From Selaginella moellendorffii (lineage: Eukaryota > Plantae > Lycopodiophyta): a stretch of 64,000 bases of DNA. The notes beneath the pieces are model-generated. The model searched no databases, was not told where the DNA came from, and saw nothing but the letters and a program-made list of their open reading frames with translations. The DNA is taken from assembly GCF_000143415.4 (NCBI RefSeq), contig NW_003314334.1:451614-515613 (forward strand), given 5' to 3'. This document shows positions 24,261-64,000 of the stretch, piece by piece; the stretch's first letter is position 1; the number at the start of each line of letters is the position of its first letter. Position numbers and translations under genes: made by a program.

Positions 24261-24489
24261 GGCAACATACACATGACTCATTCGTAAAATACTTCCACCA
24301 TTCCTCTCGATAAAATCACTGTTTCCTCGTTTACTTTCACTTTCACTTTCTTCTTTTGTTCTCATAGTGATCTCTTCGCCTGTAACTCTGGAGACCATCT
24401 TCTTCTCCGAATGCAAGTTCAGGATCTCGAAGCCCAAAGTGGTTTCACATAATTTGATCAACCATAATGAAGATGAAATTTAAACCACT

Positions 24490-26190: not shown

Positions 26191-26550
26191 TCTGATGAAT
26201 TTAGCCACAAGTTAACTTAACTGTCCGATTATCCACAAATTAGCTCAAAGTATTTAATTTAGTCCTAAATCAAATAATAAAATTAACATATTAATATATT
26301 ATTTTATCTAAATTAATTAATTTGGTGCTAAATTAAATAACTTGAGCCAACTTCTAGTCGATGTAATAAATTTGGTCATAATTTATATACTTGTAAACAA
26401 CTCATTTGATTTTGATAAGTTTATTATATTTTTTAATTAATATGTTCACTCAAATTATTTAATTTACCCCAATTAATTTATTTTGCCCTAATTTGAAAAA
26501 CATATTCTAAATGAAGTAAGAGCAAATTTATAATATTGAAAAATTCATGA

Positions 26551-29500: not shown

Positions 29501-32004
29501 TTGTACGAGTTCTTGGTGATGCCGTTTGGTTTGAACAATGCTCCAGCAACTTTCCAATGGATGATGGACGAAGTTCTTTATGATATGCCAAAAGTGACTG
29601 CTGACTTCATTGATGATGTCTTGATTCACTCGGAGGGGACGTGGGAGGAGCACATTCGTGATGTGTGTAAAGTGTTGGATCAGTTACGGGATGTTAGTTT
29701 AAACTTGAAGCGATCAAAGTGCGTGTTTGGGTCCAAGGACACAACTTATCTTAGGTACTGTATTTCTCGTGAGGGTTTCAAGTTGATCCTGACAAATTTG
29801 TAACCGTTCTAAAGTTCCCTACTCCGAAGTGTGTGAATGATGTGCAGCGCTTCTTAGGCAAGGTGCAGTATCTCGGTTGTTTTGTGGATCATCTTTCTGA
29901 TTGCACTGCACCATTGCGAGCGTTGCTGAAATCATCAACGTCATCTTTCATCTGGTCTTCAGATTTTGAGCAGGCGTTTGTGGATCTCAAAGTGTTGTCT
30001 GGTTTTGGCATATCTTAACTACACTCGACCTTTTATTTTGCACGTAGATGCTTCTGATATTGGTCTTGGAGGTGTGTTAATGCAAGAAAGCCCAAGTGTG
30101 CCTGGTTAGCGTCATCTTATTGCATATATAAGCCATATGTTACAACCAGTAGAGGTGAACTACTCCACGACAAATAAGGAGTGTTTAGCGGCAGTTTGAG
30201 GTTTCGAGAAACTTCATGCATATTTACATTGTTCTCGAGCGTTACTTGAAGGTGACTATGCTGCCGTTACTTCATTATTGAAGCGGAAGAACATGGTTGG
30301 TCGTACGGCTCAGTGGGCTTTGAAGCTTCAAATATATGATTTTGATGTTGCTCATCGCCCAAAGAGTTCTATGGCTGATGCTGATGCCCTTTCTTGAGCT
30401 CCTCTTCCTTCTCCACTTTCTTCTCATGTTTCTAATAAGCCTATTATTCTAGCATTTGTGGATTTTCTAGGTGAGGCGATTGCTGTACTTGACATTCAGT
30501 GTCCACAAGACGCAGAGCAAGATCTACATTCTTTTGATGAGGTTCGCAAGGCTCAAAAGATTGAGCCATAGATTCGAAGGCTTCGAGATGCATTTGAGGA
30601 TCTTGTATCACCTGCTGATGACTTGCCTTTCCAGCATTTACATTCTCAATATCAACTTGAAGATGGCCTTCTTTATTTTGTGGGGACAGATCCTAATGAT
30701 CATTTATGACTAATGGTGCCTTCTGTCTTTATTCCGCGGTTTCTCCATGCCTACCATGATTCTCCTGTTCTAGGTGGGCATATGGGACATCGTCGTGTGA
30801 CCAAGAACCTACGCAAGTCTTTTTATTGGCCGGAGAGGCGACGTGATGTTATCTGGTATGTGCGTAGCTGCGTTTGGTGCCAAGCTCGTAATACTCCCCC
30901 TTGTGCTGCGGAAGGATGGTTGGAGTCAATTGCAGTTTCCCGTCCGTTTGAGTTGGTGGCATTTGATCTTATGGGACCTTTTCCACGGTCGACTGCTGAC
31001 AATGAGTATATTATTATTGCTTCTGACTACTTGACTCGTTGGGTGGAAGTTGGTGCTCTTGCTAGCACCTCTGCAACAGCTGTTGGATACTTCCTCCTCA
31101 ATCGAGTGGTATTCTAGCATTCTTGTCTAGAGCAGATTCTTTCGGATAATGGTCCTGCATTTATGGCTGAGGCATTTCATATTTTGACGTCTCGGTTGGG
31201 GATACGCCACACTTTCACGAGTGCTTATCATCCACAATTAGACGGTCTAGTGGAATAGCTTGTTTGGACATTCAAAGGGATGATTGTGAAGTATATGAAC
31301 TTTTAGCATTCGGATTGGGATGGTTATTTGTTGTCTCTTTGGTATGCCTATGTCATAGAGGTGCAGAGTTCTATTGGTGCTTCACCATATAAACTTTTAT
31401 ATAGTCATAATCCAATATTATTAATGGAGTTGGGTTTACTTTTGCAATTGCCACGAGCTCCCGATGCTAGGTCATGGGATCAATATTTGATGAGCATTCT
31501 TTCACTTGTCCAAGCAGAGTCTGCCGAACACTTAGGCTGCGTACAAATGGGACAACAATGGCGCTACAACTCCCATTATCGTCCACCTGCAGAGTACACC
31601 GTATCGGGTGTTGCAGCAAGTTGGACCGCAAGTTTATAAGGTTCGGCATGATGTCCAATAGGCCAATCCTTCGGAGATTGTGCATATGCAGCAATTGAAA
31701 CTCTTCATACAAAGGGATCAAGAGCAGTTAATACCATTTACAAACCCGCCAATGCCTCCTTTTGACGTTCCTCCAGATCCCGGCCCATCTACAAGAGAAC
31801 CCTGACAACCTTCCGAGAGGAGGGGATGATGTGAGGGCTAAGTGTACGGCTATGATGCCGTATATTAATATTAGTATAGTGGGATTTTGGTAGCCGTTGG
31901 ATTTGTTTCAATCCGGACCACTCGCTTTTGTATATAAACTAGGGTTTTTGGGTTAATTAATATGTACATTTCTGTATTCCCTTTCTATATTCCATGCACT
32001 CACA
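26551..32004 (+). mobile_element. Ty3/gypsy LTR retrotransposon, defective (copy A); LTRs 26551-26698 and 31830-32004
   Basis: T(G/A)TGAG...CTCACA LTRs, ATGA on both flanks, tRNA-Ala-like PBS (TGGTGGAG in copy B), PPT gagaggagggga. Order gag, PR (LVDIGS), RT (FCIDYRPLN, MPFGL, FIDD), RNase H, INT (H..GHMG..C..C, DLMGPFP). Many stops. Confidence 0.95.
27134..27728 (+). mobile_element. Cassandra-type TRIM carrying 5S rRNA-derived sequence in each LTR
   Basis: 195-bp LTRs 27134-27328 and 27534-27728 (TGTAAGC..GCTTACA), 5-bp TSD CATTG, PBS TGGTATCAGAG. LTR core agttaagcgtccttggg..taatactg..tgggtgacctcccgggaagtcc resembles 5S boxA-IE-boxC. Empty site at about 54048. Confidence 0.92.
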
Positions 32005-38639: not shown

Positions 38640-39050
38640 ACTGAGATGCACCCGAAATGGAGTCGGAGATGGACCGAGATGGAGTCCGAGATGGAGTCTA
38701 AGATAGACCCAAGATAGAGTCCGAGATAGAGTCCAAGATGGACCCGAGATGGACCCGAGATGGAGTCCGAGATGGACTGAGATAGAGTCCGAGATGGAGT
38801 ATGAGATGGACCCAAGATGGAGTTTGAGATGGACTCGAGATGGAATCTGAGATGGAGTCCGAGAAGGACCCGAGATGGAGGCCGAAGTCAAGACTGAGAC
38901 CGAGACCGGGACCAAGACCGAGACTGAGACCAGGACTAAGACTGAGACCGAGGCTGAGGCCGAGACCGAGACCGAGCCCAAGCCTGAGTCTGAGTTCAAG
39001 TTTGAGTTCGAGTCCAAGTTTGAGTCCAAGTTCGAGTTCGAGTCTGAGAG
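38640..39050. repeat. Compound minisatellite (gagatggagtcc 12-mer, gagacc 6-mer, gagttc 6-mer arrays)
   Basis: Directly visible tandem arrays that generate the low-complexity ORFs in the track. Confidence 0.9.
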
Positions 39051-40325
39051 GGTGAAAGCCTAAAGCTTTCGTCTCCTAGACCATGGGGGGTTTCGTGAGC
39101 TCCAAAAGTATAGTAGGGGGAGGACTCCAGTGGAGCTTGTTTAGCTAAGAAAGGCCAGTTTGACCCAGGAAGGCCATACCTAGGTGTTGGGTGATGGGAT
39201 AACCACTGGGAAGTCCAAGGCTAGAGTGAATATAGATCGACAAGCGGGGTAGCTTGGTGAAGTGTTCAAGAGGCGGCTTTAGTTCCCTCGGGAGATTGAA
39301 TGGCTGATGCTCCCAGTCCAAGTGTGGGTGGCACTACCTACTTAGATACCTAGCGTGGCTCAATGGAACCTCGCTCTAAGCCCACGGCTAGAGCACCAAA
39401 AGTTGGAAGGTGGGGAGAGTACCCATGAGGCTTGCATAAGGCCATAGTGTTCTGAAATGTTGTCCCAAAAGTCCCAGACTGTGAAAAGGAAGAGGAGTAG
39501 TCCTCTAGTGCAGTGACTAAGGATACAATCACGTGGTGAGGAAGTCTCAAAGGATAGTGGGACTTAGAGGTTGGGCCTACGGGCCTTGTTCTAGTGGTAG
39601 TGTTGGCGAACACAACTATGGACCGAAAAGGGACTTGGTGGGGACTGTAAAAAGGATATTGGGGAAGGTTGCTCCCTATGTCTGTGGGCATCTTAAGGAT
39701 GCTAAGGAGTGGATCTAGGATGGTCGCTCATGGATGAATGGCTCAGTCTTTGAGAGGAGATGGGACTACGATGTAGGTGGTGTTGGACCACCGGTGTGAC
39801 CAAGGGGAATGGGCATGGCCTTAGCGTAATGAGCTGGTATGTTGGTAGTACCTTGGGGTGTCGGTTATGGGACCAGACACATGGAGCACTTGGACCAAGT
39901 GCAAAGGTTGAGTGGCATGGGGGCCATTCTTGGGACTAGTAAGTCCCCAAGTCCGGATTAGGACTTAAGGAGGTTGTGAGTGAGACTCCTCCAAGTGATC
40001 AAAGGTGTGGCTAAGTGACTAAAGTAGAATGGAAAAATTAGTCGCTTATAGTTATTGTCTTGAAAGGCTCATCAACTTGGAGCAGTTTGGATACTGACAA
40101 TACACTCAATAGAGTTTTGGAATGTGAGCTTCTTCTCGAAGGGAAGATCCTTGCATGTTGTAAATGCGTGCAATGCCAGCTTTGATTGCTGAAAGCTTAG
40201 GCAGAAGAGCCCATCTTGGCAAGGAGCCAAACTCAGTGCCACAATTTTCTATTTGGATCCTTGTAGCCAATGTGAGACCAAAATCTAAGTTATCTCTCTA
40301 AACATCAATCAATTGGTGTAGTGCA

Positions 40326-43300
40326 TGTGGTTTTTACCCTTTATTTTATAGTGATTTACTATAGAATAACCACGAAGCGGAACTTAAACCCTTCATATGC
40401 CACATGTCATATGCCACATGTCTAAATGATAGTGGTGTGGAACACAAGTTTCAGGGCCTTGGGCCACTAAATGCAAGAACGGTGCCAAACTCCCAAGCAT
40501 AGAGCCAAGGAACAATGGCACTAGAGCACATAATGACTCTTGAGCATACAGCCCAAGGAAAGAAGGGACAGGAGCACAAAGTGACTTGGAATAGTCCTAG
40601 AGTATCCAGCATCCCAATGTCAAGATCAGCATGCAAAACAGAGCCAATGGAGTCTAGTGCTATTTTAACATACCGGTGGCCTAACACAAGGATATGGGTA
40701 TTCTACCAGCTAGCATGGAATGGAACTTAGGCTTAGACCCAAGCCGGGCACAGAACAAAGACAGGCACGCAAGCAAAAGTTAGACTATACCTCAAGTTGA
40801 CCTACCCACTATCCCTACTTTATATAGGCCCCCCTCTTAAGGAACGCACACTTTGGGCTTTCACCTTTAGCCTCCTTTAGACTTTCCCAACACTAGCAAG
40901 TGTAAGTCAACATCATGAGTTTCTCATCATCATGTTAAATATGCTTGACTAAATGACAACTTAGGATTTCCTTCTTTAGTGCCCTTTTGGTCTAAGTGCA
41001 CATGTTGTAGCGCACCTTATCTCTCTCCCCTTAAGCTAACTGGAAAAAGGGCAATTGCTTGATGAGAGAGCCCTTAGTGGCTATTTTATCCCCATTTATC
41101 CCCCAAGGTTCTAAGGATCCACGGTGACAGTATATCCAAATCTCATCCCATAATCACATGCGCTACACTCACCCCCCTCTTCAGAGATGTCAATGTCCTC
41201 ATTGACTATTGATTAACAACCCCTACTGAACCAAAGGGAACCAACACCTCCATTTCCCCCCTTCATTGACTATTGATTAACAACCCCTATTGAACCAAGG
41301 GGAACTAGCACCTCCATTTCCCCCCTTCAGAGATGTCAATGTCCTTATTGACTATTGACTAACAACCCCTACTAAACCAAGGGGAACTAGCACTTCCATT
41401 TCCACACTCAATCTACCAATCCTTTCATTGTGTAGACCATATTGACTATTGACTAACAACCCCTACTAAACCAAGGGGAACTAGCACTTCCATTTCCGCA
41501 CTCAATCTACCAATCCTTTCATTGTGTAGACCAACTATTCCATGTGAGGAAACTAGTCATCCACCCGTACTGCAGTCCCACGGTAGATACCGTGAGGCAA
41601 CTAGTCATGCACCCGTACCGCAGTCCCACGGTGGATACCTTCGTCCGTGGATACTCCACACAAGAGGAAGGACATACGCATGGATGCCCAATACGTATGA
41701 TTTCAAATTTAGGGGTAGGAATATACCTTGCTCAAGGGTATATTATACTTTTTTTTAGTAGCCACTAATCAATGGGAATCGAACCCGTGCCATTTGCTCC
41801 GATACCAACTATAACGCACCTTATCTCTCTCCCCTTAAGCCAACTGGAAAAGGGGCAATTGCTTGATGAAAGAGCCTTTAGTGGCTATTTTATCCCCATT
41901 TACCCCCATTTGGTGACAGTATATCCAAATCTCATCCCATGATCACATGCGCTACACATGTGATGACTAGTTTCTCAACTAGCTTAGGTGGAGACTGATA
42001 ATGGGTGGTCCAGCAATACTAACCTCCTACCATTGTGGTAGTAAGGAAAGAATATCTGAAAGGACAACTGATAGGTAACTTTCGATACCCGAAGTCACAT
42101 TCGCGACACTCTCCCCCCCTTAGGGAAGATCGACGTCTTCGTCGATGTATACTCGAGTCTAGAATACTGCCAAGAAAACAACTCCAAAAAAAGTTTATGA
42201 TATTCATATTATGTGAGAAATGGACCAACTTAAATGAGTTAGGGTAACCTCTTTGTCTAACGCAGATGCGCTACCAACTCAGACACCTTCCGGTCATCGC
42301 CGACAAGGAAATGACCAATGGAGTTAGCCACCCTTACTACTTTGGGTATCACCTAGCTTACAAAAGTGTGATACACCCCTACCTGCAGAGACATAGAGAT
42401 AAAAGCTAAAGGCCCTAACCCTCTGGGGGAAAAACCAAACCCGTTGGTAAGGTTTAGATAATCTACTATAAACAGGCAATTAGAGTTGTTTACACAGTTA
42501 TACCCTTTCAACGAAATAAGGAACATCGATAGAAAAGTGGGTGATGTGATCAGTCTATAGTAGCTACCCTATGACTAAAGATTTCACCATGCACACGAAA
42601 TGCTGAAGCTAATTTGCCTATACTAGCCCAAACTCAAAGATCAATAAATGGACAATATCAAAGTCATAAACAATGATATCTTAGAGATTTAATTATCAGT
42701 GAATAAAGCTTAGAACACAAAAGTATTCCAAGTAAGTTATCATCCGATAAACCAGTATTAGAGGATAGGAACCACCAATATCATTATATTTGGAAAACAT
42801 AAGAGTCATCATTTAACAAAATTCAATAGCCAATGTATCATCAAGGAAACTCAATGATAAAACTAAACAATCAAAGATTTTAGATAACATGCTAAACAAC
42901 TTATAAAAGACAATTAAAAGATCATAAGTATCATCGATTGGCAAGCAAGATGCTTGCAAATGTATCACCTAAAAGAAATAACATTTTAATCTATCAGAAC
43001 TAATGTGAGCAACAATCAACAACACAGAATGAATATGGGAAGACTAACAAACACTCGTTCATGCCAACTATCATACTAGTCAATTTGAATAAATCTTAGT
43101 CAATAATACCAAGGAACTAGAGTTGCTCAAGCAAGTGTCAACAACATCCTACCAATATCTCAAACTCCATAGACCAATCCAAAGCAAACCATAAAGAATA
43201 TGTGGTAATGCAAAAAGCCAAAAGCCATCAAAGAGAATAATTAACTCTCATGAAAGATCATCAATCATCCTATCAATGAAAAGATGCATAATCATTGTCG

Positions 43301-46300: not shown

Positions 46301-48000
46301 AGATTATTATTTCCAACATGCATCAAAGTAGGGTCTCTTGATTGCATAATGTGAACACAGGCAATGAGTCACATCTCGTTGTGAATCATCTCTCCAAGAA
46401 GAGAAGATGATTTATGTGTTTGATCCTTCGTCCCTAACAATTCTCTGAGAGAGCATTACTTAAACTAATAAACTTATCCCTATAGTCTTGATTGATCCAC
46501 TCATAATCATGTCTAGGAAGGATCCACTAGTCCCGTGCTAAATAGTTACGGACCAGCCTATTTGCCACTCATAGCAAACCTAGGGAAAGTTTACTTTCAC
46601 CTACAGTACATGGAACAGCTCATAGAACCAGTGATAGGCTAACATTAATCCTGCCAACTCAAAGTGTAACCTTGAGTTGCTAATCTGCCTCACTCACGAG
46701 CCTAAGCAAAAACTCGTGCAAAATGGTACACCTCAAATCCCACTTCTTAGCCCAAGAGTAAGCTTACATTATTACAGTACAAAAAAGGTAACCAAATCCA
46801 TATCCAAGGAACTAATGCAAAGTCTTAGCACCCAAACTTGTACCCACTCAGATCATTGTTTTCATCTCTGCATATGCAATAAAACTAGTTGCCCAATCTC
46901 ATTAGATAGTACTCGCTGAGACGTATCCTTTAATACCGCACGTGGTTTTTACCCTTTATCCTATGGTGATTTACCATAGGATAACCACGAAGCAGAACCT
47001 AAACCCTCCATGTGCCATGTGTCATATGCCACGTCTCCAAAGGATAGTGGTGTGGAACCCGAGTTTCAAGGCTTTGGGCCATTGAATGCAGGAACAGTGC
47101 CAAACTCCCAAGCATGGAGCCAAGGAGCAATGGCACTAGAGCACGGAATGACTCCCAAGCATACAGCCCAAGGAGCAAAGGGACAAAAGCACGGAGTGAC
47201 TTGGAACAGTCCTAGAGTATCCAGCATCCCAATGCCAAGAACAGCATACAAAATGGAACCAAACGGAGTTTGGCGCTATTTCAACATACTGGTGGCTTAA
47301 TGCAAGGATATTCCATCAGCTAGCATGGAATGAAACTTAGGCTTAGACCCAAGCCAAACATAGAACAAGGATAAGCATGCAAGCGAGAATTAGACTAATT
47401 CTTAAGTTAGTCAACCATGCCCGACCTACCCACTATCCTTACTTTACATTTGGAACCCTCCACAAGCCAAGAACACACGCTTTGGGCTTTCACCTTTAGC
47501 CTCCTTAGTACTAGGAGTTAGTTTCTAGGACTAATTCAAAACTTACTAAATATGAAATGGTGTTAGATTGTGAATTTGGACACAAGACGAACACCATTGT
47601 GTTTAGGATAATTTTTACATTCTGTAAATATGCTAAATTAGCAAATCTAGACACTTTCCATAAATAGCAATTAGGACCAAAATAAGACTAACACAAAGGG
47701 CATAATAGCGAAGGTGTTTAGCAGACACTGTAAGCTATCATCTTCTGAGTATTGAGGGACTAAACTCAATATCACAGGGGTTCTCAACACTAGCAAGTGC
47801 AAGTCAACATCATAAGTTCCTCATCACCGTGTCAAATATGCTTGACTAAATGACAACTTAGGTGATGACTAGTTTCTCAACTAGTTTAGGTGGAGATTGA
47901 TAACAGGTCCTACAATACCGTGCCGTTGTGGTAGTAAAGAAAGAATATTTGAAAGGATAGTCAATAAGTAACTTTTGATACCCGAAATCACATTTGCAAC
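40326..48000 (-). mobile_element. Old degenerate LTR element (LARD-like); LTRs about 40326-42109 and 46941-48000
   Basis: Long diverged direct repeats. On the minus strand, PPT agggggggagag precedes TGTCGCG at 42109 and a decayed Met-type PBS lies near 46930-46938. The 4.8-kb interior is almost free of ORFs and has a strong A/C skew. Confidence 0.75.
41006..41956 (-). mobile_element. TRIM nested in the LTR; LTRs 41006-41167 and 41810-41956
   Basis: TGTAGCGC..GCGCTACA termini, TSD CATGT (41001-41005 / 41957-41961), minus-strand PBS tggtatcggagc, PPT agagggggtgag, internal tandem repeats at about 41180-41530. Confidence 0.9.
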
Positions 48001-49650: not shown

Positions 49651-50328
49651 ATGGCGGGCGGATCGAAATCGCAGCGCCGCAAGAAGAAGGTGCGATCCGG
49701 CGATGCGTCGTTGGCGCCACATCCTGGCACTATTCGCGAGGTATCTCAGCTGGATTTGTGATATTTCGAGAATGCCATGGCCGATCTCTCCCAAATCTCT
49801 AGAGTTCACCTCCGACGGCTCGAAATCCCGGTGCTCCAGCGTCGACAGTGGCTGCTGCTCCAGCCAGCGATCAGGTATCGGCACGATTTTCAAGCGATCT
49901 TCCCTGGCGCTCATCGAGAATGATCTCTATAGGTTCCTCCTAGCGTCGCGGCATCTGCTGCTCGAACCGGCAATCAGGTATTGCTAAGATTTTTCTCGAA
50001 ATTTCTCCTCCTCGACCATGGATTTATCTTCTGGTTCATCGTAGGTGCCGGCGTCGATCAATATCGTCGATCAGGTACCATCGCAACCCAGAAAACTCTT
50101 CGCGTAACCCCATTCTCCAGATATCTCGACTCGCCATCGCCCCCGATCCGGCGATTTCCCGCACAGATTCGCCAGTTGGAGATGGAGCTGGAGAAACGAA
50201 CGCTGGCCGCCGTGGGGAGGCTCCAGGAGTATGACATCGCTGCGAAGAGGATGGGAAGAGCCGAGCAATCGGATGCGATTCGCAAGAGACTTTGGGAGAA
50301 AGTCCAAGCCCGCGAGAATGGGCGCTAG
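49651..50328 (+). CDS. Paralog of the micro-exon orphan gene (exons 49651-49740, 49803-49874, 49933-49977, 50045-50074, 50167-50328; 132 aa)
   Basis: Same internal exon sizes (72/45/30 nt). N-terminal RRKKK. The last exon is in frame only from the acceptor at 50166. Confidence 0.6.
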
Positions 50329-50399
50329 TCCGGTACCACTGTACGGCATGATCCTCTTTACCCGATGTACGGTATGACCCGGTCTTCGTCTATTTTGAA

Positions 50400-51160
50400 A
50401 TGGAGCATTGCATGGGAGAGCTTCTCAGTGGATGCGGCGCCCATAGCTCCGACTGCTCCTACGTGCTTGTGATCCTCAACTATCGCCTGCCATCGCTGGC
50501 GGCATTGCTGTGGCAGAGAGGTTTGATCCAAATCTTTCGCGGATGGCGCGTCGCATTGTTTTCCCTTGTTTCTTGCAGCTAGATTGCGAATGTGCGCCGA
50601 TGGAGGAGCTAATCGGCTCTACAACGAGCTGCCGGTGCTTCTGGGACAGGAGGAATCGATCGTGAGAGAGGTAAGATTAATAATTGTTAGAGGTAAGAGA
50701 TTTTCCCTTGTGTAGGTTCATACCGGATGCGATCATTGGGGATTTGGACTCCATTCTCCCGCAAGTGAGGCAGTTCTACGAATCAGGAGTCTGGTTTCGT
50801 TCGTTTGATTTCTGGAAAGTTTGTTTCTTCTCAGGGCACTGCTGTTCTAGACAAATCTCACGACCAAGACACGATAGATCTTCTCAAGTGCATCTCTTTC
50901 GTCGCCGAGAAATCCAATGTAAGAACTGTTTAGCCGTTTTTCTTCGTTGTTTGGCTTCTTCTTTACTATCGCGTGTGTGTTCTTCGTAACAGATGAAGAT
51001 CTTGGTGGTGGGGCGTTGGGTGGAAGATTTGACCACAACATCAACGTACTCTTTTCCTTCAGGAGCTTCCGGATCATGGTCTATTTTCTTCCTAGAGACG
51101 TTCTTCACACCATCCACGTCTCGCCCGAGCTTGAAGGGCCAAATCCTCTCGGCAAGACTC
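50400..51160 (+). pseudogene. Thiamine pyrophosphokinase pseudogene (copy B)
   Basis: YVLVILNYRLP, MCADGGANRLY, FIPDAIIGDLDSI, SHDQDT, GRFDHNIN. Frameshifts and truncation. Confidence 0.85.
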
Positions 51161-51364
51161 AAATTCGTAAAGTACTTCCACCATTCCTCTCGATAAAATC
51201 ACTGTTTCCTCGCTTACTTTCACTTTCACTATCACTTTCTTTTGTTCTCACAGTGATTTCAAAGCAAGCATTAGGGGATCATTCGCTCCGTCAAGGCAAG
51301 CCTTCGTGGCGCTCGATTTTGGTGTTAGCTACCATGCCAGAGCTTCTTCGCGCTCCGTTTTAAA

Positions 51365-51660
51365 GGATTAACTTTGACATCATTTAGCATGTCATGTTGA
51401 ATCTTTTGTCACTTCGTGCAGCAACAAAAACTATCGTGGATAAATGGGTATGCTTTGAAAGTTTGATTAAAGCTGGGTTTCTTTCCCTTTCTGCACTGTT
51501 CCAGAAAGCACGCGTTACGAGGAATTACGACTCGCCTGTGAAGCAAGTTAGCACTGGGGAAAGCTGAGAACTTGCAAGCCGAGAGATTCAGTGTGGAGGG
51601 ACGTGGTCTCGTAAGAACTGTGTGAGTAAAGGCCTCTTCGCCTGTAACTCTGGAGACCTG
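51365..51660 (+). pseudogene. IWS1 3' fragment with internal deletions
   Basis: Matches pieces of 20280-21060 (gacatcatttagcatgtcatg; cagtgtggagggacgtggtctcgtaagaactgtgtga). Confidence 0.85.
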
Positions 51661-51746
51661 CAAAGGCAAGTTAAGGAACTCGAAGCCCGAGAGAGCTGCT
51701 TTCTGTGTAAAGATAAACTGGTTTCAAATAATTTGATCAACCTCAG

Positions 51747-53069
51747 TTACTGGTAAAAGGTCATCTCCTTGCTGGATTTCTTCACGTTGGCTTTATACCC
51801 TTTCTCGAAGTCCTTGGCAAGAACTATGTATCGGTTCCTACGCACTGCTTGCATCCCAGCTTCCTGACAAACTGCTGATATCTGGAAAGCACAAGTTCGT
51901 GGGTTTTTTCTTGTCAAAAGTCCTAATGAGCGCTTACTTCGGCAGCCGTGATCTTGTCTGGCCTCGAAATGAAGTCCTCGAAATCAACTTCATCGCTGAG
52001 GTTCATCTTGGACGTGCAAACCTGGAAAATGAGTCGCTTCTCTTGCCGATCTGGATAGGGGAACTCGATCTTCCTGTCGAGTCTTCCAGGCCTCAGTAGA
52101 GCGGGGTCCAAAGTATCAGCACGGTTTGTAGCCATGATAACCTTCACGTTGAGACATTGATCGAATCCATCCAACTGCAGGAGAACGCTTTGAGCAAAGG
52201 TTTTTAGAAAATGGAAAGGAAAGAAAAACCTGGGTAAGAAGCTCCATTAAAATTCTCTGCACTTCCCTGTCTGCGCCAGTTTGAGAATCAAAGCGAGCAG
52301 TGGCGATGGCATCTACTTCATCGATAAAGATGATCGCTGGCGCATTTGCTTTGGCAAGGTTGAAAACATCGCGCATCATCCGTGGACCCTGCACAACGTT
52401 TCGACACGAACGTTCTCCTGTTGAGAGCTTACAAAAAAAGAGTAGAAAGAACTCACCTCTCCAAGGTATTTTTGCACGAACTCTGATGCCACAACCCGGA
52501 TGAAAGCAGCCGAGGTGTGATGTGCCACAGCCTTGACGAGCATGGTTTTTCCAGTTCCCGGAGCACCATACAACAAAACTCCCTTGGGTGGATCGACTCC
52601 GAGCTGCCTGTAGAGCTCAGGGTGCGTCAGCGGAAGCTCCACAGCTTCTCGAATCTCTTGCTTCTGTAACTCTAAGCCCCCAATTTCCTGCAAAACCAAA
52701 GAAAAGTTTTAGCAAATCTGGTAAAGTTTCTAGAAAAGAAAAATGATAAGCTTGAATGGAAGAAAACTAGATCAAAGGTGGTGTAAAGTTTGTCTGCAAA
52801 AGAGAAGGAAAACAAAAGGAACTTCGTACCGCATATGTGACCTCCGGTCTGAGAGAATCCATGAGAATCGACACCGAAGAGTCCACCTCCAATGGAAGAA
52901 CATCCATGAGAGCCAATGAGTGCCTGTTTACACCAACCGAGCTCCCTGGCTTGAGAAGCTCTCTGTTCACAGTGCTCTGGATCCTAACATACCGAGGTGT
53001 ATACTCCCACAAGACAATCGCGTGGTCCCCATCGATCACCTCCACCAAGTGGCCTATGCATAGTGGCAT
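51747..53069 (-). pseudogene. RPT3 copy 3: N-terminal coiled coil lost, remainder (about 333 codons from MPLCIG) uninterrupted
   Basis: Exons splice in frame to MTFYQ*. Upstream of 53069 there is a frameshifting deletion and an AT-rich insertion. Confidence 0.75.
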
Positions 53070-56000
53070 GGACTAGGATCTGGCAGCGTGTGAATCTCAT
53101 CTCCTGCACTCTGATGAATTTAGCCACAAGTTAACTTAACTGTCCGATTATCCACAAATTAGCTCAAAGTATTTAATTTAGTCCTAAATCAAATAATAAA
53201 ATTAACATATTAATATATTATTTTATCTAAATTAATTAATTTGGTGCTAAATTAAATAACTTGAGCCAACTTCTAGTCGATGTAATAAATTTGGTCATAA
53301 TTTATATACTTGTAAACAACTCATTTGATTTTGATAAGTTTATTATATTTTTTAATTAATATGTTCACTCAAATTATTTAATTTACCCCAATTAATTTAT
53401 TTTGCCCTAATTTGAAAAATATATTCTAAATGAAGTAAGAGCAAATTTATAATATTGAAAAATTCATGATATGAGGGCAACTGTACGGCTACGATGCCGT
53501 ATACTAATATTAACGTAATGGGATTTTGGTAGCTGTTGGATTGGTTTTAATCCGGACCACTCATTCTTATATATAAGCTAGGGTTTTTGGGTTAATTGAT
53601 AATTCCATGCACTCACATTGGTGGAGGTGAGAGGCAACTTTGATTGTTCATGAAAAGGGTTTGGATTTGGGATTTTGGTTTAGATCTAGCTTCTATATCT
53701 TCTAGATTTAATTTTTTCCATTTCCTTTCTTTTGTTCTTCCCTTTCAGATTTTTGTTTAGATCTAGCTTTTTGCATTGTTTAAATCTACCATTTCCTTTT
53801 AACTTTTTGTCATTTCTTTTCTTTTGCTCTTTCTTTTTTGTTTATCTTCATGGCGAATCAGCAATCTCCTCCTTTGACGCTAGAGTAGCAGTTGGTCCAA
53901 TTGCTTGATGGTATGCGCTTGCAATTGAACAACCAAACTTAATTGATGGTAGCATTCACGGCATGTGGTCTAACTCCTCCTACTCTTGGTGCCAATCCTT
54001 GTGTTCGTCCAGAGTTCTTTCATGGGAATCTTGGGGATAATGTGTACCATTGGTTCGATCACTTCACGGTGATTGCCACATATCATTTTTGGGATGATGC
54101 TCGACATTTATGTGAGTTTCCCACGTGTTTCCAAGGGATGGCATTGTAGTGGTACAATGGATTGAGTGTAACCACTCGTGGGGATTAAAGTGTTCTTTCA
54201 GACGTTTTCAAATGTGCCTTCGGACATGCAGACGATTGTGATAATGCCTTTCAACAATTGCATCGTCTTCGCCAAGGGCCATCTGAGTCGATGATGCAAT
54301 TTGGCGTTCATTTCTGAAGTCTTTTACTTTGTGCGGAGCCCAATATGTCGGAGCGGATCAAGCTAGAAATGTTGTGGCCAGCACTTTGTCAAGATCTTGT
54401 TAGACTTGTGCATGCACTTGCTCCTGCCACTCTTGACGATGCTCTTCGCTTGGCACAACGTTATGAGACATCGCTTCTTCCACTTCTCACTGCACGTCCT
54501 TTAGCTCTACTTCCTATGAGTGATGGTCCTATTCCAATGGAGGTTGATGCTGCTGCTACTCGAGTCCAAGGACAAGGGCGAGGACGTGGTCATGGCCATG
54601 ATGTTCGTTGCTGGGCATATGATGAAGTTGGTCATACTTATCGGCGTTGTCGGTGCTTTCTAGATTGGTGACCTCCATTTTCTGTGTGGAGACCTTGGCG
54701 TCAACAACGTCCCGTTGGTGCTGCTGCAGTGGAAGGTTTGGACACCACGGTACATCTGGGAAACAAGGAGTTGCGCAAGTGATGGAGGGACCTTGCGAGA
54801 ATAAATTAGTGACCCCTCCATCTTTCTTTCGGGAGTATCATCAAGGGGTTCACTTAGCACCAGTTCATCTAGTGTTTACTTTCCAAGCTCATTTTTATAA
54901 GAGGTCTTCTATTATTCTCTCCATGTTAGTTGATATAGGTTCGAGTTTATCTTCTATTGCTCGACCTGTTGCCACATGTTGTGGTCTACACTTGCATCAT
55001 GTGGCGGACCCAATTTTTATTCTTTATGGCAACAGCCGTACACATGTATATGCACGACATGAGGTGGATCTAGTTGTGCATGTGGGCAATCTTGAGCTTG
55101 ACATTGCGGGTGGTGCCGAGTCAAGCTTTTAACCTCATTCTTGGTATGGATTGGTTGCAGTGCAATCATGCCAAATGTGACTTTAACGCTTCTCCCCCTT
55201 GTCTCATACTTCCTTATGTTTCATCCATTCCTTTCACTTCTGTACCTCTTCGGCCCTTTACCTCTACCTTTGCTTCCATTACTTTTGTTCCCCCACTATT
55301 TTCTCCTGTGTTTCCATCTTGTTCTGCTCTTCCTTTTTCCGATCCCTCCAACAATCTTTGTGTTGTAGCTGTTGACCAGCTCACGAAAGAGTATTCTGAT
55401 CTTTTTGAATTTGACTTATCGTTTGGGGCCAACATTGCCACATGTTATCCCATTCCAACTGGGGATGCTCATCCGATCAAGGTTCCGATTCATCGTAGGT
55501 TACCCAAGGAGATTAAGATTTTATGTGCAAATGTCAAGGAGATGTTAGAGAAGGGTGTTATTCGGAAGTCGCAGAGTCCTTGGGCATGTAAACCTCATCT
55601 TGTGACGAAGTCTAATGGGAGTATTCGTTTTTGCATTGATTATCGTCCATTAAATGAAGTGACAATCCCGAATGTGTACCCTCTTCTTCACACTACGGAT
55701 CTCTTGGATCGTCTAAGGCGAAGTGGTTGGTTCACCAAGCTAGATCTTGCTTCTGGGTACTGGCAAGTACTGATGGCCGAAGAAGATATTCCTAAGACTT
55801 CTTTTCATATACCGTTTGGTTTGTACGAGTTTTTGGTGATGCCGTTTGGTTTGAACAATGCTCCAGCAACTTTCCAGTGGATGATGGATGAAGTTCTTTG
55901 TGATATGCCAAAAGTGACTGCTGACTTCATTGATGATGTCTTGATTCACTCGGAGGGGACGTGGGAGGAGCACATTCGTGATGTGTGTAAAGTATTGGAT

Positions 56001-57958
56001 CAGTTACGGGATGTTAGTTTAAACCTGAAGCGGTCAAAGTGCGTGTTTGGGTCCAAGGACACAACTTATCTTAGGTACTGTATTTCTCGTAAGGGTTTGC
56101 AAGTTGATCCTGACAAATTTGCAATCGTTCTAAAGTTCCCTACTCCGAAGTGTGTGAATGATGTGCAGCGCTTCTTAGGCAAGGTGCAGTATCTCGGTTG
56201 TTTTGTGGATCATCTTTCTGATTGCACTGCACCATTGCAAGCGTTGCTGAAATCATCAACGTCATCTTTCATCTGGTCTTCAGATTTTGAGCAGGCGTTT
56301 GTGGATCTCAAAGTGTTGTCCGGTTTTGGCATATCCTAACTACACTTGACCTTTTATTTTGCCCGTAGATGCTTCTGATATTGGTCTTGGAAGTGTGTTA
56401 ATGCAAGAAAGCCCAAGTGTGCCTGGTTAGCATCATCCCATTGCATATATAAGCCATACGTTACAACCAGTAGAAGTGAACTACTCCACGACAAATAAGG
56501 AGTGTTTAGCGGCAGTTTGGGGTTTCGAGAAACTTCATGCATATCTACATTGTTCTTGGACGTTACTTGAAGGTGACCATGCTGCCGTTACTTCATTACT
56601 GAAGCGGAAGAACATGGTTGGTCGTACGGCTCAGTGGGCTTTGAAGCTTCAAATATATGATTTTGATGTTGCTCATCACCCAGAGAGTTCTATGGTCGAT
56701 GCTGATGCCCTTTCTCGAGCTCCTCTTCCTTCTCCACTCTCTTCTCATGTTTCTAATGAGCCTATTATTCCAGCATCTGTGGATTTTCTAGGTGAGGATT
56801 CTGTGCCGTCGGCGGTTGCTGTACTTGACGTTCAGTGTCCACAAGACGCAGAGCAAGATCTACATTCTCTTGATGAGGTTCGCAAGGCTCAAAAGATTGA
56901 GCCATGGATTCGAACGCTTCGAGATGCATTTGAGGATCTTGCATCACCTGCTGATGACTTGCCTTTCCAGCATTTACATTCTCAATATCACTTTGAAGAT
57001 GGCCTTCTTTATTTTGTGGGGACAGATCCTAATGATCATTTACGACTAATGGTGCCTTCTGTCTTTATTCCGCGGTTTCTCCATGCTTACCATGATTCTC
57101 CTGTTCTAGGTGGGCATATGGGACATCGTCGTGTGACCGAGAACCTACGCAAGTCTTTTTATTGGCCGGAGAGGCGACGTGATGTTATCTGGTATGTGCA
57201 TAGCTGCGTTTGGTGCCAAGCTCGTAATACTCCCCCTTGTGCTGCGGAAGGATGGTTGGAGTCAATTGCAGTTTCCCGTCCGTTTGAGTTGGTGGCATTT
57301 GATCTTATGGGACCTTTTCCACGGTCGACTGCTGGAGAAGGGAGAAAAAAAAGACAAGCTCGAGGATTCAAGCTTAGGAAAGTAAACTTGAGAGGTTCAA
57401 GGTTAGGACTGTATTCCTAACCTTGACGTGAGCAGTAGAGACTATAAAAGTAGGACTTAGAATGTTTTTAGACTGATCCCTAATACAAAATACATTGCAA
57501 TACATCGTCATTCTGCCTATCTCTTGGCTCTTCACAGCAATGTCTTACTTACCCATCGCCTTCAAGGGATCAAAGGCGTGGGACTAGCACCTTCAAGCAC
57601 TTGTTCACAGTCCCAACTTGGCTTGGCACAAGCAGGTAAGTGCATTCTTCTTGTAGTGTAGTTTTAGATTTAGGGACTAGATAAGATTTGAAGCTCCTAG
57701 GAAAATCTCGTGTGGACGTTTCCTCCCAGTCCAGAGATTCCAGGAGTTTTCACTGGCGACCACGGTGGGATAGAGCAGATCAAGACGATCATTTTCCCCA
57801 AAACTTCAAGGAAAACGGACCAAAGACGCTCAAGAAAATGGCATAGGAAGAAAAAGCCCCAAAAATCAAGAAAAACAAGACCGTAAAACAAAAACGGTGG
57901 AAGAGCATGAAGGAATGAAGAAAAAAAATGGAGCGTAAGACCAAAAGATGAAGAACAC

Positions 57959-58435
57959 TTGAAGATTGAAGCCACCCAAGTCGTGGAAAACTTGGAGCGT
58001 ACGCGTAACTGTTTTTGGCGAGAGGTTGAAGAAAGCGAATATTCCAAGAATCTGCGAGAAGGAAACGACCAAGGGAAAATTCTAGCGGCTGGAGATGGAG
58101 GAAGAATGAAAAAGCACGACTGCCCATTTGGAGACACAAGCTGTACAAGATACGAAGACTGCCTTTTGTGTGGTTTCAGAAATTGTGCAAAACCGTACAA
58201 GGAATGCTATCCAAAATGGCGATGTGACACTTGCAAGCAAGCAAAAGCTAGACTCCGAATCAAGGATGAAAATGCCACAGCGGGGAAGAGAAGAAAACGA
58301 GAAGAAATAGCCCAAGAAAACGACACTAAAAAGAGAGACGATAGTTTAGAACAAGCAGCGAAACAAAGCTTTAGTTGCTTACAAAAACTTCAAGAAACGA
58401 TTCTGCGACTCTTCTACAAATTGTCTAGCAAATAG
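57959..58435 (+). CDS. Element ORF1: Cys-rich putative zinc-binding protein (start uncertain)
   Basis: C-x6-C-x5-C-x2-C repeated twice, followed by the basic motif GKRRKR. Confidence 0.5.
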   Translation: MKIEATQVVENLERTRNCFWREVEESEYSKNLREGNDQGKILAAGDGGRMKKHDCPFGDTSCTRYEDCLLCGFRNCAKPYKECYPKWRCDTCKQAKARLRIKDENATAGKRRKREEIAQENDTKKRDDSLEQAAKQSFSCLQKLQETILRLFYKLSSK

Positions 58436-58456
58436 AAAGGATGCAAAAATGAGGAA

Positions 58457-59308
58457 ATGTTGAAAGAAAAATATGTTTACTTCGATTTCTTTGCAACTCG
58501 AAGAATCCTGACTTGGGTGTATCGCAGACACCTCTTTCAACAAACAATTGTCGAATTCCTAGGCATACACAAACATGAAACGTTTCAACCATTAACGCTT
58601 GCTTTCAACACTGATTTGACGAGAGTCATAGCAGCAACAGAGTGTGGTACCTTTGAACCACAAGTTCGTTGGTTTGTGGACACTCTTAGATTTAGAGATT
58701 TCGAAGAGAACGCGGAATTACTTTACCGACTTCTTCAAAGTCCTCTTCGCGTAACGCTACCAACAAGCACTCTTATCGAACTATATACTATAGCATATTG
58801 GCACCGTTTAGGACGGACGAGAATAGCTGGAGAATTAAGAAATCAAGGACAAGACCATCAACAAAATCGAATTCGGAATTCGAGATTAAGAAACCGACAG
58901 GACCCTGAACTTGAGTCAAGTTCAAGGGAACGACTTGGAAACTCGAGGATAACAAGTCGAAGGAGGAGAAATTTAAGACAGGATCACAATAGGCCAAGAT
59001 TAAATACAGTACCAAACTTCAACTTTGACACTGAGGTCCAACGTCGAAACCCCAGCTTAGAGCGACATATCACTCGCAACCAACAAGGAAGAGTGCGTCC
59101 AAGCAGTCTCAACATTTTAAGGAGTATTTTAGGAGATCCTGCATCAAGGATTCAAACTTATAATGCAAGAGTATTAATTGAGACTATCCCTTGGGAAGTT
59201 CGTGAAGCGATCGACTCTGATCGTGAAAGAGAACGTGCTATACGATTGAGGGCAGTAGAACGCTACCGACAAGAACAGCATCAGGGAAATGCACCATCAC
59301 GAAATTAA
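58457..59308 (+). CDS. Element ORF2: unknown 283-aa protein
   Basis: ATG-initiated long ORF with a globular-looking N-half and an Arg/Asn-rich C-half. Confidence 0.55.
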   Translation: MLKEKYVYFDFFATRRILTWVYRRHLFQQTIVEFLGIHKHETFQPLTLAFNTDLTRVIAATECGTFEPQVRWFVDTLRFRDFEENAELLYRLLQSPLRVTLPTSTLIELYTIAYWHRLGRTRIAGELRNQGQDHQQNRIRNSRLRNRQDPELESSSRERLGNSRITSRRRRNLRQDHNRPRLNTVPNFNFDTEVQRRNPSLERHITRNQQGRVRPSSLNILRSILGDPASRIQTYNARVLIETIPWEVREAIDSDRERERAIRLRAVERYRQEQHQGNAPSRN

Positions 59309-60012
59309 TCAAAGAGAAACTCGCGCTGGATAAACCCGCGCACACATAGGCTTAAAGCAGCAAGAAATTGCTGGAAACTATATTGTGACGTGTGAACGTC
59401 ATTAGAGACTAGAAACATACGAGAATTAGGACATTAAAATACAACTACTGCTGTATTCAGCACTTTCAAATACTACCAACGACTGAGAAACACAAACACT
59501 CATAGTGAGAGCTCGCATTCCAGTACGACCAACATATTGTAAGAGACTAAAACAATTGTTCAAGAATTCAGATAGGATTGGACTCCAGAAGAGAGTTGCA
59601 ATCGTTTGCATACCTGCTCGATCCCAAATTTGGAGAGCAGCACCAAATATCACTAGCGAACAGCTACACCGATCAATTTATGACACAACCGACCTCCTTC
59701 CAACAAACAAAATCGTGCTTACTTACACTACCAAATTTTTCAAATACAAGACCTTTCCTGAGCTAGACTCATGAAAGTGACCTCGAGAAGAAACTCGGGA
59801 AGAATCGAGAAAGAAAAACTCGATTGAAGACTCAAGACACAAGAGCTTGACTTCGCATTTCTACTACAAAAACAAACTTGCAGAAGACTCAAGACATAAG
59901 AGCTTGACTTTGCAATCTATGAAGAACAACAATTGACTACAGACAACTTAGGCAAAACATAAATTCAGGAAACTTACCTCAACAATCAAGTTGAGAAGAC
60001 TTAGCAAACTGA

Positions 60013-62393
60013 ATGTACAAACACAAACCAGACCCAATCAAGATCCGGGAAAGAGATCTTCGACAAAAGAATCGAGAAGTGAAAAAGGAAGAGATAGGAA
60101 AAGAGAAACTAGAACAACAACAGCAACAAATTTTAGAAACAATATTAGAGAAGTACGACAAGGAGGATAAAGAAATTCAAGTTGCCGAGTCAAGCAACTC
60201 AGCCAACGATAACAAAGAACTAAATAGTGAAGACGCCCCAAAGTTTGAGGCATTTGAAGAAGCCGAATACATAGTACCAAAGTTTTACTCAAATCCAGAC
60301 TCACCAGAACAACAATTTCACCAACAAAGTCTACAACTTCAAATGGCAATCATCAACCCAGCGACAGCCATAGGGAACATGATTTCCTATCCCATTTTTA
60401 CTGGTGGAAAAACCGAAGATGCAAACCAGCATCTTAAACAATTTGATCAAATTGTAAAGATGAACAAACAGGAAATGCATCGGGAAATACTTTTCCCATA
60501 CACACTTAAGGGAAAAGCACTCGATTGGCATAATACACTCGATGATGCTTTGACCCATGATGAAAAGGTCACACAATTCAAGGAGCAATTCCAGACTGGT
60601 GGAACTCCAGAAGAACACTATGAGATCATCAAAAACTTCAAGCAAAAATCACGTGAAGGAATTCAAGATTACACTCGACGATTTAAGTTTCATGCAAAGC
60701 GCTGCAAGGATTTGATAACAGATAAAGGAAAGAGCTTATCCTATATCCAAGGACTCAAAGAAATCTATAGAAACATGGTAGCAATTGCTGCTGCAACAGA
60801 GAATCCAGATGATGAAAGTGTTGATACACTCTCCAAAGAAATCCTCACATTGGAAAAGAGATTCAAGAAATTCACAAAAGCTATACCTTCACAAACCGAT
60901 GACGGTTCAGATGATGAAGAAGAGGAAGAAATACACATTAAGACAAAGAAGAAAACACCAAAAGACCAAGACTTGAAGGATATAATCAAGAAAATCTCAC
61001 AAACCGAACTCAAAGCAGGAGTGTGGTGTACAAAGTGTAAAAATGAAGGACATACATATTTGGAATGCAAATTTCAGCTTCCAAAATGTCAAATTTGTGA
61101 TAGAGAAGGCCATATAGCCAAGAATTGCCGATTTAGGAATACAATGGAAGTTTCAAGAATCGAGAATGCTCCTCGACAAGAGCCCAATCCTCAATATCAA
61201 GGAAACTGGAATCAAAACGTGCGACCACCACGAAATCAACCTCCAAGATATAACAATTATTATCAACGTGATGATAATTTCTATAATCAAAGACAAAACT
61301 ATTACCAGCGAGACAATAGCAACTACAATAGAATACCCCCTCAAGATCAAAGACCAAACAACTATCCTGAAATTATGGAAGAAACTACAATACNNNNNNN
61401 NNNNNNNNNNNNNNNNNNNNNNNNNNNNNNNNNNNNNNNNNNNNNNNNNNNNNNNNNNNNNNNNNNNNNNNNNNNNNNNNNNNNNNNNNNNNNNNNNNNN
61501 NNNNNNNNNNNNNNNNNNNNNNNNNNNNNNNNNNNNNNNNNNNNNNNNNNNNNNNNNNNNNNNNNNNNNNNNNNNNNNNNNNNNNNNNNNNNNNNNNNNN
61601 NNNNNNNNNNNNNNNAGCAAGACCACCTGCAGCACGGAATGTTGAGGTTGAAGTCGAAGACTCACAAACTTATGAAGAACCAGCAATACGAACTATCACG
61701 AGACAACAATACAAGTCTCAGCAACCAGATAATCTGGAAGAACAAGATTACAAAGATGAACTGGAAATTATCCCAGAAACCAAATGGAAGAAAAGCAAGA
61801 AAATACTTAAAGCAATTCAAGCTGAATTGCAAGCACAAGATCTAGAAACAATCAAAGAACACGACAAACAATCAAACAATCAAGAAACAAAAAGTTTTAC
61901 CCAAGAGGAGCTGGCACCTGTTCAGCAGAAAGAAAAGTTTCATGTGGAAGAGCAAGCTGAAGCAAGGTTGAAGCAAAACCTGGTGGAAGATGAACAGCCT
62001 GATCAGATTGAGCAACCAGCAGAAGAAGACAAAGACCTGCAGTGGATAAAGGAGTTTCAGACGCAGGAACTTGAGGTGGTGCTTCCGAAGTTTTGTGAGC
62101 AGACGGAGCAGAAGAAAAATTCAATGCCAGAGTTTGACGTGGAACAGGCAGTAGCTGGTCAAGCTGGCTTGGAGCAGAAAGCTGTTGTGAAGAAGAAAGA
62201 AGAAGATGTTAGACAACAAAGAGGTGTAGAAGTTCAGAACCTTGTGGAGCAGCCATCAAGAGGAGCCGTATACCCAGGCCAAAGTTTGCACTTGAAGGTG
62301 GCTGGTGTGAAGTTGGTGAAGAGACGAGGAAGTGTGTTTCTCAGGTTTTGGTGGGATAGAGGCAAGCTGGTTTCATCCTTTGTAGCTCTGTAG
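60013..62393 (+). CDS. gag: Gag (capsid-like domain, two CCHC knuckles, long Glu/Gln-rich tail), spanning the assembly gap
   Basis: FTGG..EDANQHL, FPYTLKGKALDW, KQKSREGIQDY..RF, CTKCKNEGHTYLEC, CQICDREGHIAKNC. The frame after the gap is open from 61617 to 62393. Confidence 0.8.
61394..61615. other. Assembly gap (222 N)
   Basis: N run. Confidence 1.
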
Positions 62394-63743
62394 GAGTAGA
62401 GGAAGTAAGTAGTAAAGCAGCAAAACTGAAAGCCGTCCAAGAGAAGTCGTGGCTGTTTCAAGTCGGATGTTTAAAGTTTCGAGAAGAGGCGTTTGTGCAA
62501 CTGATCTCGGGAAGAAGCTGGTCAAATTCAGATCACAAGACTTTGAGGAAGCAGCTCAAACTTATGAAGAGGAGGAAGAGGAGGAGGAACCGCATGAGGG
62601 AACAGCTACCCACGATGCAGCAATGGAGCAATGACTGCGGGACGCAGCACAAGGCAGTCGTGGGAGAGTGGAGAAGGGAGAAAAAAAAGACAAGCTCGAG
62701 GATTCAAGCTTAGGAAAGTAAACTTGAGAGGTTCAAGGTTAGGACTGTATTCCTAACCTTGACGTGAGCAGTAGAGACTATAAAAGTAGGACTTAGAATG
62801 TTTTTAGACTGATCCCTAATACAAAATACATTGCAATACATCGTCATTCTGCCTATCTCTTGGCTCTTCACAGCAATGTCTTACTTACCCATCGCCTTCA
62901 AGGGATCAAAGGCGTGGGACTAGCACCTTCAAGCACTTGTTCACAGTCCCAACTTGGCTTGGCACAAGCAGGTAAGTGCATTCTTCTTGTAGTGTAGTTT
63001 TAGATTTAGGGACTAGATAAGATTTGAAGCTCCTAGGAAAATCTCGTGTGGACGTTTCCTCCCAGTCCAGAGATTCCAGGAGTTTTCAACTGCTGACAAT
63101 GAGTATATTATTATTGCTTCTGACTACTTGACTCGTTGGGTGGAAGTTGGTGCTCTTGCTAGCACCTCTGTAACAGCTATTGGATACTTCCTCCTCAATC
63201 GAGTGGTATTCTAGCATTCTTGTCTAGAGCAGATTCTTTCGGATAATGGTCCTGCATTTATGGCTGAAGCATTTCATGTTTTGACGTCTCGGTTGGGGAT
63301 ATGCCACACTTTCACGAGTGCTTATCATCCACAATTAGACGGTCTAGTGGAACAGCTTGTTTGGACATTCAAAGGGATAATTGTGAAGTATGTGAACTTT
63401 TAGCATTCGGATTGGGATGGTTATTTGTTGTCTCTTTGGTATGCCTATGTCATAGAGGTGTAGAGTTATATTGGTGCTTCACCATATAAACTTTTATATG
63501 GTCATGATCCAATATTACTAATGGAGCTGGGTTTACCTTTGCAATTGCCACAAGCTCCCGATGCTAGGTCATGGGATCAATATTTGATGAGCATTTTTTC
63601 ACTTGTCCAAGCAGAGTCTGCCGAACACTTAGGCTGCGTACAAGTGGGATAACAACGGCACTACAACTCCCATTATCGTCCACCTGCAGAGTACACCGTA
63701 TCGGGTGTTGCAGCAAGTTGGACCGCAAGTTTATAAGGTTCGG

Positions 63744-63843
63744 NNNNNNNNNNNNNNNNNNNNNNNNNNNNNNNNNNNNNNNNNNNNNNNNNNNNNNNNN
63801 NNNNNNNNNNNNNNNNNNNNNNNNNNNNNNNNNNNNNNNNNNN
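63744..63843. other. Assembly gap (100 N); the paralogous position in copy A holds 54 bp (31647-31700)
   Basis: N run whose flanks match copy A. Confidence 0.95.
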
Positions 63844-64000
63844 CTCTTCATACAAAGGGATCAAGAGCAATTAATACCATTTACAAACCCGCCAATGCCT
63901 CCTTTTGACGTTCCTCCAGATCCCGGCCCATCTACAAGAGAACCTTGACAACCTTCCATTATTCCGAGAGGAGGGGATGATGTGAGGGTTAAGTGTACGG

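Follow-up and report, generated by a model that had tools for sequence, protein, structure and literature searches.

The 64,000-nucleotide stretch of Selaginella moellendorffii DNA analysed here, hereafter the window (contig NW_003314334.1, positions 451,614 to 515,613), carries near its downstream end a long terminal repeat (LTR) retrotransposon of 5756 bp (57333-63088, forward strand), which very probably inserted recently and belongs to a non-autonomous, TR-GAG-like family of this species that carries gag and is 5.5-5.8 kb long. Its two 420-bp LTRs (57333-57752 and 62669-63088, starting with TG and ending with CA) are 100% identical, with no differences, and a perfect 5-bp target-site duplication (TSD), ACTGC, stands directly outside both ends of the element (57328-57332 and 63089-63093). 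A primer-binding site (PBS)-like 16-mer (57754-57769, forward strand) begins with TGG one base past the 5' LTR, and a short purine tract of seven bases resembling a polypurine tract (PPT) adjoins the 3' LTR (62662-62668), the latter being the same in all six copies of the family. An Rfam scan of the element returned no match. The five further copies, L001 to L005, come from the S. moellendorffii assembly GCA_000143415.2; they were reached through annotated fragments of gag and mapped by BLASTN.

The element was inserted into an older Ty3/gypsy element, within the region for its RNase H and integrase zinc finger (56476-57332, forward strand; Pfam RT_RNaseH and Integrase_H2C2, and alignment to a paralogue); this older element resumes after 63093. 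The paralogue of this host element, located 26.3 kb upstream and 97-99% identical, is uninterrupted, as its sequence at 30975-31010 runs unbroken through the site with a single ACTGC (30992-30996). Because this empty site exists in the same window, the boundaries and the TSD of the element are proven, and the LTRs without differences, the perfect TSD and the recent movement that an earlier note had read from the letters alone are all borne out.

The host Ty3/gypsy element and its surroundings are present in two copies (about 22850-31300 versus 49730-57332 plus 63089-64000), which are 92-100% identical, lie 26.3-26.9 kb apart and have a long intact open reading frame (ORF) in neither; the pair may stem from a segmental duplication or from two insertions by the same family. 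The young element is found in the downstream copy only, and past the insertion the host element has a second assembly gap, of 100 N (63744-63843).

The element carries a long gag ORF (60013-62393, forward strand), in which a capsid domain and two CCHC knuckles are followed by a Q/N/P-rich stretch and an acidic tail. For the window copy, Pfam recognises Retrotrans_gag (9.6e-09), with Ty3_capsid and a CCHC knuckle under their cut-offs, and in the intact 792-aa products of the relatives it finds Retrotrans_gag and Ty3_capsid only. In L001 and L004 the gene is an uninterrupted ORF of 793 codons, which extends from the gag ATG to the end point of the window ORF at 61827-62393.

In the window this gene is crossed by an assembly gap of 222 N (61394-61615), and whether pol might lie there bears on the explanation that the element is an artefact of a mis-joined assembly, with pol in the gap or with identical LTRs produced by collapse. 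The gap does lie inside the element, and L003 has its own run of N (11180-11366) beside the equivalent position; the Q/N/P-rich, low-complexity part of gag seems to be a recurrent assembly problem. However, in four relatives without a gap there (L001, L002, L004 and L005) the matches to the gap edges are exactly 222 read bases apart, and in L001 their translation extends the gag ORF with Q/N/P/Y-rich sequence. Because four relatives have 222 read bases of gag ORF at this place, the gap stands for low-complexity gag coding sequence and hides no pol, and the prospect that pol was hidden there, by which the earlier note would have had its proposal fall, is not borne out. The flanks, the TSD and the empty site also agree with one another, and the lengths of the full-length copies are consistent (5499-5818 bp), which leaves an assembly artefact extremely improbable.

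The window copy of gag has one frameshift, whatever the gap size estimate, since its part before the gap lacks one base compared with each of the two intact relatives; the frame open up to the gap differs from the one that, beyond it, matches the ORF of the relatives. This difference beside the gap may be an error of a read or of a read end.

Across the copies, variation in the gag core follows its reading frame. The ratio of non-synonymous to synonymous substitution rates (dN/dS) is 0.19-0.37 in frame versus about 1 in the two off frames, the synonymous share among unique variants is 0.47 versus 0.19 expected, and the variants are distributed over the three codon positions as 50/38/95, so that the gag core is under purifying selection. 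The acidic tail, 330 codons long, is open far beyond chance (0 of 2000 shuffles) and has no clear codon periodicity. The synonymous-share test is unreliable on its own, as it also gave p=0.0016 for a gag-tail frame that contains nine stops. Only the selection results for gag and for ORF1, a frame ahead of gag described below, are trusted, because these alone have codon-position periodicity behind them.

Two further observations concern gag. A second frame overlapping the gag tail, 123 codons long with a 110-aa ORF starting at ATG, is open in the five relatives (L001 11223-11591; L002 and L004 11589-11957; L003 11592-11960; L005 7008-7376) and has one stop in the window; its support as a coding frame from the synonymous-share test was set aside, since the same test favours a stop-filled frame. 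The gag fragments annotated by RefSeq (P0001-P0005, on L001-L005) bear names such as involucrin-like, RNA polymerase II degradation factor 1-like, bromodomain-containing protein DDB_G0280777-like, adenylate cyclase-like and similar, and these names of cellular proteins are probably a misnaming of retrotransposon Gag caused by its low complexity.

Protease, reverse transcriptase, RNase H and integrase were all absent from Pfam scans of every open stretch of the window element, in any frame and on either strand, and no pol was found in any of the six copies; the earlier statement that no pol follows gag is thus upheld. Broken ORFs entered the searches piece by piece. Apart from the window copy (57333-63088), the full-length copies are L004 (7561-13075, 5515 bp, LTRs 100% identical with one gap column, perfect TSD), L002 (7561-13075, 5515 bp, 99.3%, TSD matching at four of five bases), L003 (7582-13080, 5499 bp, 96.2%, perfect TSD) and L001 (6883-12700, 5818 bp, 96.6%). 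L001 has no TSD, for which reason it is probably a recombinant between two copies. The sixth, L005 (5757-8495, 2739 bp), has LTRs of 99.5% identity and a perfect TSD and is internally deleted; the deletion probably came after the insertion, because it also took the PBS. LTR-pair identity is at least 99.3% in four of the six copies, and TSDs stand at different sites in five of them (the four full-length copies other than L001, and L005), four being perfect and one matching at four of five positions. Because all copies lack pol and yet five of them have TSDs at different sites, the transposing form is the pol-less form itself, and the family has moved repeatedly as a gag-only, non-autonomous element.

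As a mechanism, the element would be transcribed from its 5' LTR, in which a TATA-like motif, TATAAAAG, is found at 57443, its RNA would be packaged by the family's own Gag, and for copying and integration it would borrow the protease, reverse transcriptase and integrase of an autonomous Ty3/gypsy-type element that makes 5-bp TSDs.

Several points weigh against a gag-only family mobilised in trans. No autonomous partner emerged: gag word searches, one of them with a longer query that let in proteins as long as about 1390 aa, gave no more than the five annotated proteins of the family itself. The PBS motif occurs, among the DNA examined, in copies of the family only, and the host Ty3/gypsy element does not share it. 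The frameshift in gag affects the youngest insertion, so that either Gag was supplied in trans or the difference is a read error. The identity of the LTRs could partly reflect reads collapsed in the draft assembly. Finally, the census is thin, with six copies in all and a picture of the subfamilies, introduced below, that comes from two copies of one and three of the other. In addition, a tblastn search over the DNA examined matched only members of the gag-only family.

Between the PBS and gag lies a leader of 2.2 kb. The earlier note had placed three ORFs on the same strand here (57959-58435, 58457-59308 and 59505-59774), and these coordinates are found, with bounds that use bacterial starts (TTG, ATG and GTG). 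With starts at ATG only, ORF1 spans 58106-58435 (109 aa) and ORF2 spans 58457-59308 (283 aa), both on the forward strand, and ORF3 is an open stretch without an ATG. The longest and second longest open stretches of the leader, 290 and 174 codons, were each unequalled at their rank in 2000 dinucleotide shuffles, and because their lengths exceed those in all the shuffles they must be coding now or have been so until recently.

By BLASTN mapping, the copies separate into two subfamilies, A (the window copy and L001) and B (L002 to L004). They differ in the middle of the leader, where A carries a specific segment of 852 bp (58471-59322, forward strand) that is nearly co-extensive with ORF2, and B holds an unrelated segment of about 547 bp in its place; the leader of L002 diverges in a further segment. 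The 3' part of the element (window 61616-63088: the gag tail, the 3' non-coding region and the LTR) is 95-97% identical across both subfamilies, and between them identity falls to only about 87-90% in the gag core and leader. The higher conservation of the 3' part could be due to recombination or to constraint on cis-acting sequence.

ORF2 is an orphan, found only in the window copy and in L001. No relative was found in a word search, in Pfam, among PDB sequences or by exact look-ups, nor at E<=0.001 in an exhaustive HMMER search of 1.84 billion representative proteins, and the single-sequence AlphaFold2 (AF2) model is poor (predicted local distance difference test, pLDDT, 45). Its sole counterpart in L001 is 95% identical and has one in-frame stop. 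The earlier note had proposed dN/dS for each ORF as a check; for ORF2 the variants are flat over the codon positions (10/14/16), and the synonymous-share signal of p=0.004 is not counted, given that a frame with nine stops elsewhere gives p=0.0016. On this evidence ORF2 was genuinely open at the origin of subfamily A, with no demonstrable constraint since. In both A copies ORF1 and ORF2 lie in the same frame and are separated by only one stop. Readthrough from ORF1 into ORF2 was considered and found unsupported, as the context of the stop (TAG AAA, TAG GAG) is not known to permit it; a shared frame is expected by chance one time in three.

The sharp boundaries of the subfamily swap, which nearly coincide with ORF2, the additional divergent leader segment of L002 and an ORF2 that is open but unconstrained are what would be expected if the leader modules were pieces of other elements or of host genes that template switching had picked up (transduction) and that have no role for the element. 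A source for such fragments would then be looked for, but ORF2 has no relative in the protein searches just described and its segment has no second copy in the 170 kb of Selaginella DNA compared. Capture of this kind is considered very unlikely.

The fate of the third frame is seen from subfamily B. Its members carry ORF-B, an ORF of 308 codons starting at ATG, which is intact in L002, interrupted by one stop in L004 and by two in L003. A tblastn search with the intact 307-aa ORF-B of L002 finds a remnant of its C-terminal half in the window (59327-59771, forward strand), in which ORF3 is included and is homologous to the last 112 of the 307 residues. In subfamily A this remnant has one frame change, no ATG and no N-terminal part, and 160 residues' worth of the C-terminus survives. 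ORF3 is thus debris of an older, longer ORF, the tail of ORF-B, and the simplest reading is that the B-like arrangement is the older one and that ORF2 replaced the front of ORF-B.

ORF1 differs from the others in having a sound coding signature. The protein has nine Cys in its first 42 residues, followed by a basic stretch and a long helix; the AF2 model (pLDDT 72) places a helix at 41-107 and is confident for that one long helix only, and no match was found in Pfam or among PDB sequences. In the two A copies ORF1 is intact and 92% identical. Among the five full-length copies its variants are distributed over the codon positions as 20/8/33, with a synonymous share of 0.44 versus 0.19 expected, so that here the check on selection does return a signature of purifying selection, and ORF1 is a real protein gene or was one until recently. 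In all three B copies it is broken, by one or two stops and zero to two frameshifting indels each, with eight or nine of its nine Cys kept even there. Because one stop is common to all three, the B ancestor had already lost the full ORF1, and yet at least three insertions, including two very young ones, descend from it. ORF1 may act in trans from A copies.

The copies lacking or breaking each of these frames have moved, and because of this no leader ORF is needed in cis for transposition. That a three-ORF cassette is retained, as the earlier note suggested, is not supported, with ORF1 broken in B, ORF2 confined to A and ORF3 a broken remnant; the view that the ORFs match no described domain is supported. 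The leader is more fittingly viewed as a mosaic of exchangeable modules with family-specific orphan ORFs, which would be comparable to the extra ORFs found in the 5' region of other plant gypsy lineages.

Signals for expression of the leader and of gag are found in the LTR and beyond it. The motif CAGGTAAGT, at 57633-57641 of the 5' LTR, corresponds to the consensus 5' splice-donor motif, as predicted from the sequence, and is kept in 12 of 12 LTRs of the six copies. The presumed transcript has 23 ATGs ahead of the gag ATG, 22 of which lie between the donor motif and gag, and some device is needed for the translation of Gag. No pyrimidine-rich splice acceptor was found within about 310 nt upstream of gag. 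In the LTRs of L001-L005 (e.g., L004 7657-7884) there is also an open stretch of 76 codons with a 66-aa ORF starting at ATG, and the window LTR has no open stretch of that length.

These signals enter into the proposal that the leader ORFs form an accessory cassette that aids the element, by anti-silencing, regulation or movement, in the manner of retroviral accessory genes. A donor motif in every LTR, with nearly all upstream ATGs between it and gag, would fit differential expression, and the proposal also draws on ORF lengths beyond chance, on the strong codon periodicity of ORF1 and the Cys that it keeps even in broken copies, and on the intact state of both ORF1 and ORF2 in the youngest copy. 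The lack of a pyrimidine-rich acceptor within about 310 nt upstream of gag, however, speaks against the proposal, and so does the state of the ORFs: subfamily B transposed at least three times with a common stop in ORF1, ORF2 is absent from B, broken in L001 and without periodicity, only one B copy out of three has an intact ORF-B, which in A is a remnant, and no homologues or folds point to a function. An accessory cassette is on balance unlikely, and a role as an accessory gene is possible for ORF1 only. A narrower version, in which ORF1 is a working accessory protein under selection, with a zinc-binding Cys-rich head and a long coiled-coil helix, made from unspliced RNA while gag is expressed through the LTR splice donor and ORF2 and ORF-B serve as exchangeable second modules, is held to be quite unlikely; if true, a non-autonomous element of a lycophyte would divide its labour much as a retrovirus does.

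L001, L002 and L004 have the PBS-like 16-mer unchanged, L003 has it with one mismatch, and L005 has lost it by deletion. The first 11 nt of the site equal the string given for human tRNA-Arg (PMC11905727). Of 121 metagenome matches to the PBS that were scanned, 120 are not tRNA genes, and the only exact 15-nt 3' end is that of a tRNA-Asp(GTC). This gene is located at 1049-1124 on the reverse strand of the metagenome contig L120 (1.8 kb, 55% GC), and its 3' end with an added CCA is an exact complement to 18 bases of the PBS region of the element.

TR-GAG elements, described in angiosperms as elements of less than 4 kb with a single ORF (PMC4350172, 2015), are the closest kind to the Selaginella family, which has all of their defining features except the 4-kb limit and the single ORF. 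Both have LTRs, a PBS, a PPT and a 5-bp TSD, and similarity to gag only, with no protease, reverse transcriptase, RNase H or integrase; they also have in common at least two copies (six here), some of them young, and no obvious autonomous partner. In contrast, the full-length Selaginella copies (5499-5818 bp) are above the 4-kb limit, carry ORF1 and either ORF2 or ORF-B ahead of gag in a 2.2-kb leader, and have a gag ORF of 793 codons with a long tail, in a host that is a lycophyte. The S. moellendorffii genome was itself screened in that study, under the 4-kb limit (PMC4350172).

Several plant Ty3/gypsy lineages are already described as having extra forward ORFs in the 5' region (PMC6317226, supplement 5), and those of at least 250 codons were reported in 33% of Tekay, 23% of TatII and 21% of Ogre elements (PMC6317226, Neumann et al. 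2019). By description, the Selaginella leader resembles these lineages, with a forward ORF of that length and without a conserved domain between the PBS and gag, represented by ORF2 (283 aa) and by ORF-B of L002 (308 codons), and the 5-bp TSD is likewise common to them. Ogre, TatIII and Retand use a tRNA-Arg PBS, and the PBS of the Selaginella family may be of this type too. These lineages are, however, autonomous elements of 7.7-24 kb, in Tat/Ogre with a pol that carries an extra RNase H of the archaeal type, whereas the Selaginella family has no pol, which also makes its assignment to a lineage by reverse transcriptase, RNase H or integrase impossible.

Large retrotransposon derivatives (LARDs) are elements of more than 4 kb that depend on a partner in trans and are without coding capacity. 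The Selaginella family is similar in being larger than 4 kb and in needing a partner in trans, but differs in that it keeps a gag under purifying selection. Among the elements of the same host species, Selgy, a Selaginella-specific gypsy clade, is of similar size, about 5 kb, filled by a polyprotein, and has a 4-bp TSD and a tRNA-Ala PBS (PMC6317226, supplement 5). Because Selgy makes 4-bp TSDs and the gag-only family has 5-bp ones, Selgy is an unlikely helper.

Elsewhere in the window, pentatricopeptide repeat (PPR), leucine-rich repeat (LRR) receptor-like and B-lectin genes are found. An intronless ORF of 1045 aa (5978-9115, forward strand) has the full architecture of a bacterial-type topoisomerase IA, with Toprim and Topoisom_bac domains, a zinc ribbon and C-terminal repeats, and its product may be an organelle-targeted enzyme. 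Two direct repeats (40323-40622 and 46938-47237) with 87% identity, spaced 6.6 kb apart and enclosing no ORF of at least 200 aa, are probably the remains of an old, degraded LTR element, and a tandem array of 103-nt units with strong GC skew is located at 38643-38871.

These observations extend the gag-only habit of TR-GAG elements to a lycophyte, at a size that their definition screens out, and show that the leader ahead of gag can carry exchangeable orphan ORFs, one of them with past selection. The naming of the family's gag genes in RefSeq as involucrin-like and other cellular proteins is a probable misannotation worth flagging. With two subfamilies recently active in one genome, of which one has ORF1 and ORF2 intact and the other has them broken or replaced, the family offers a natural case for asking whether the extra ORFs of plant retrotransposons act at all.

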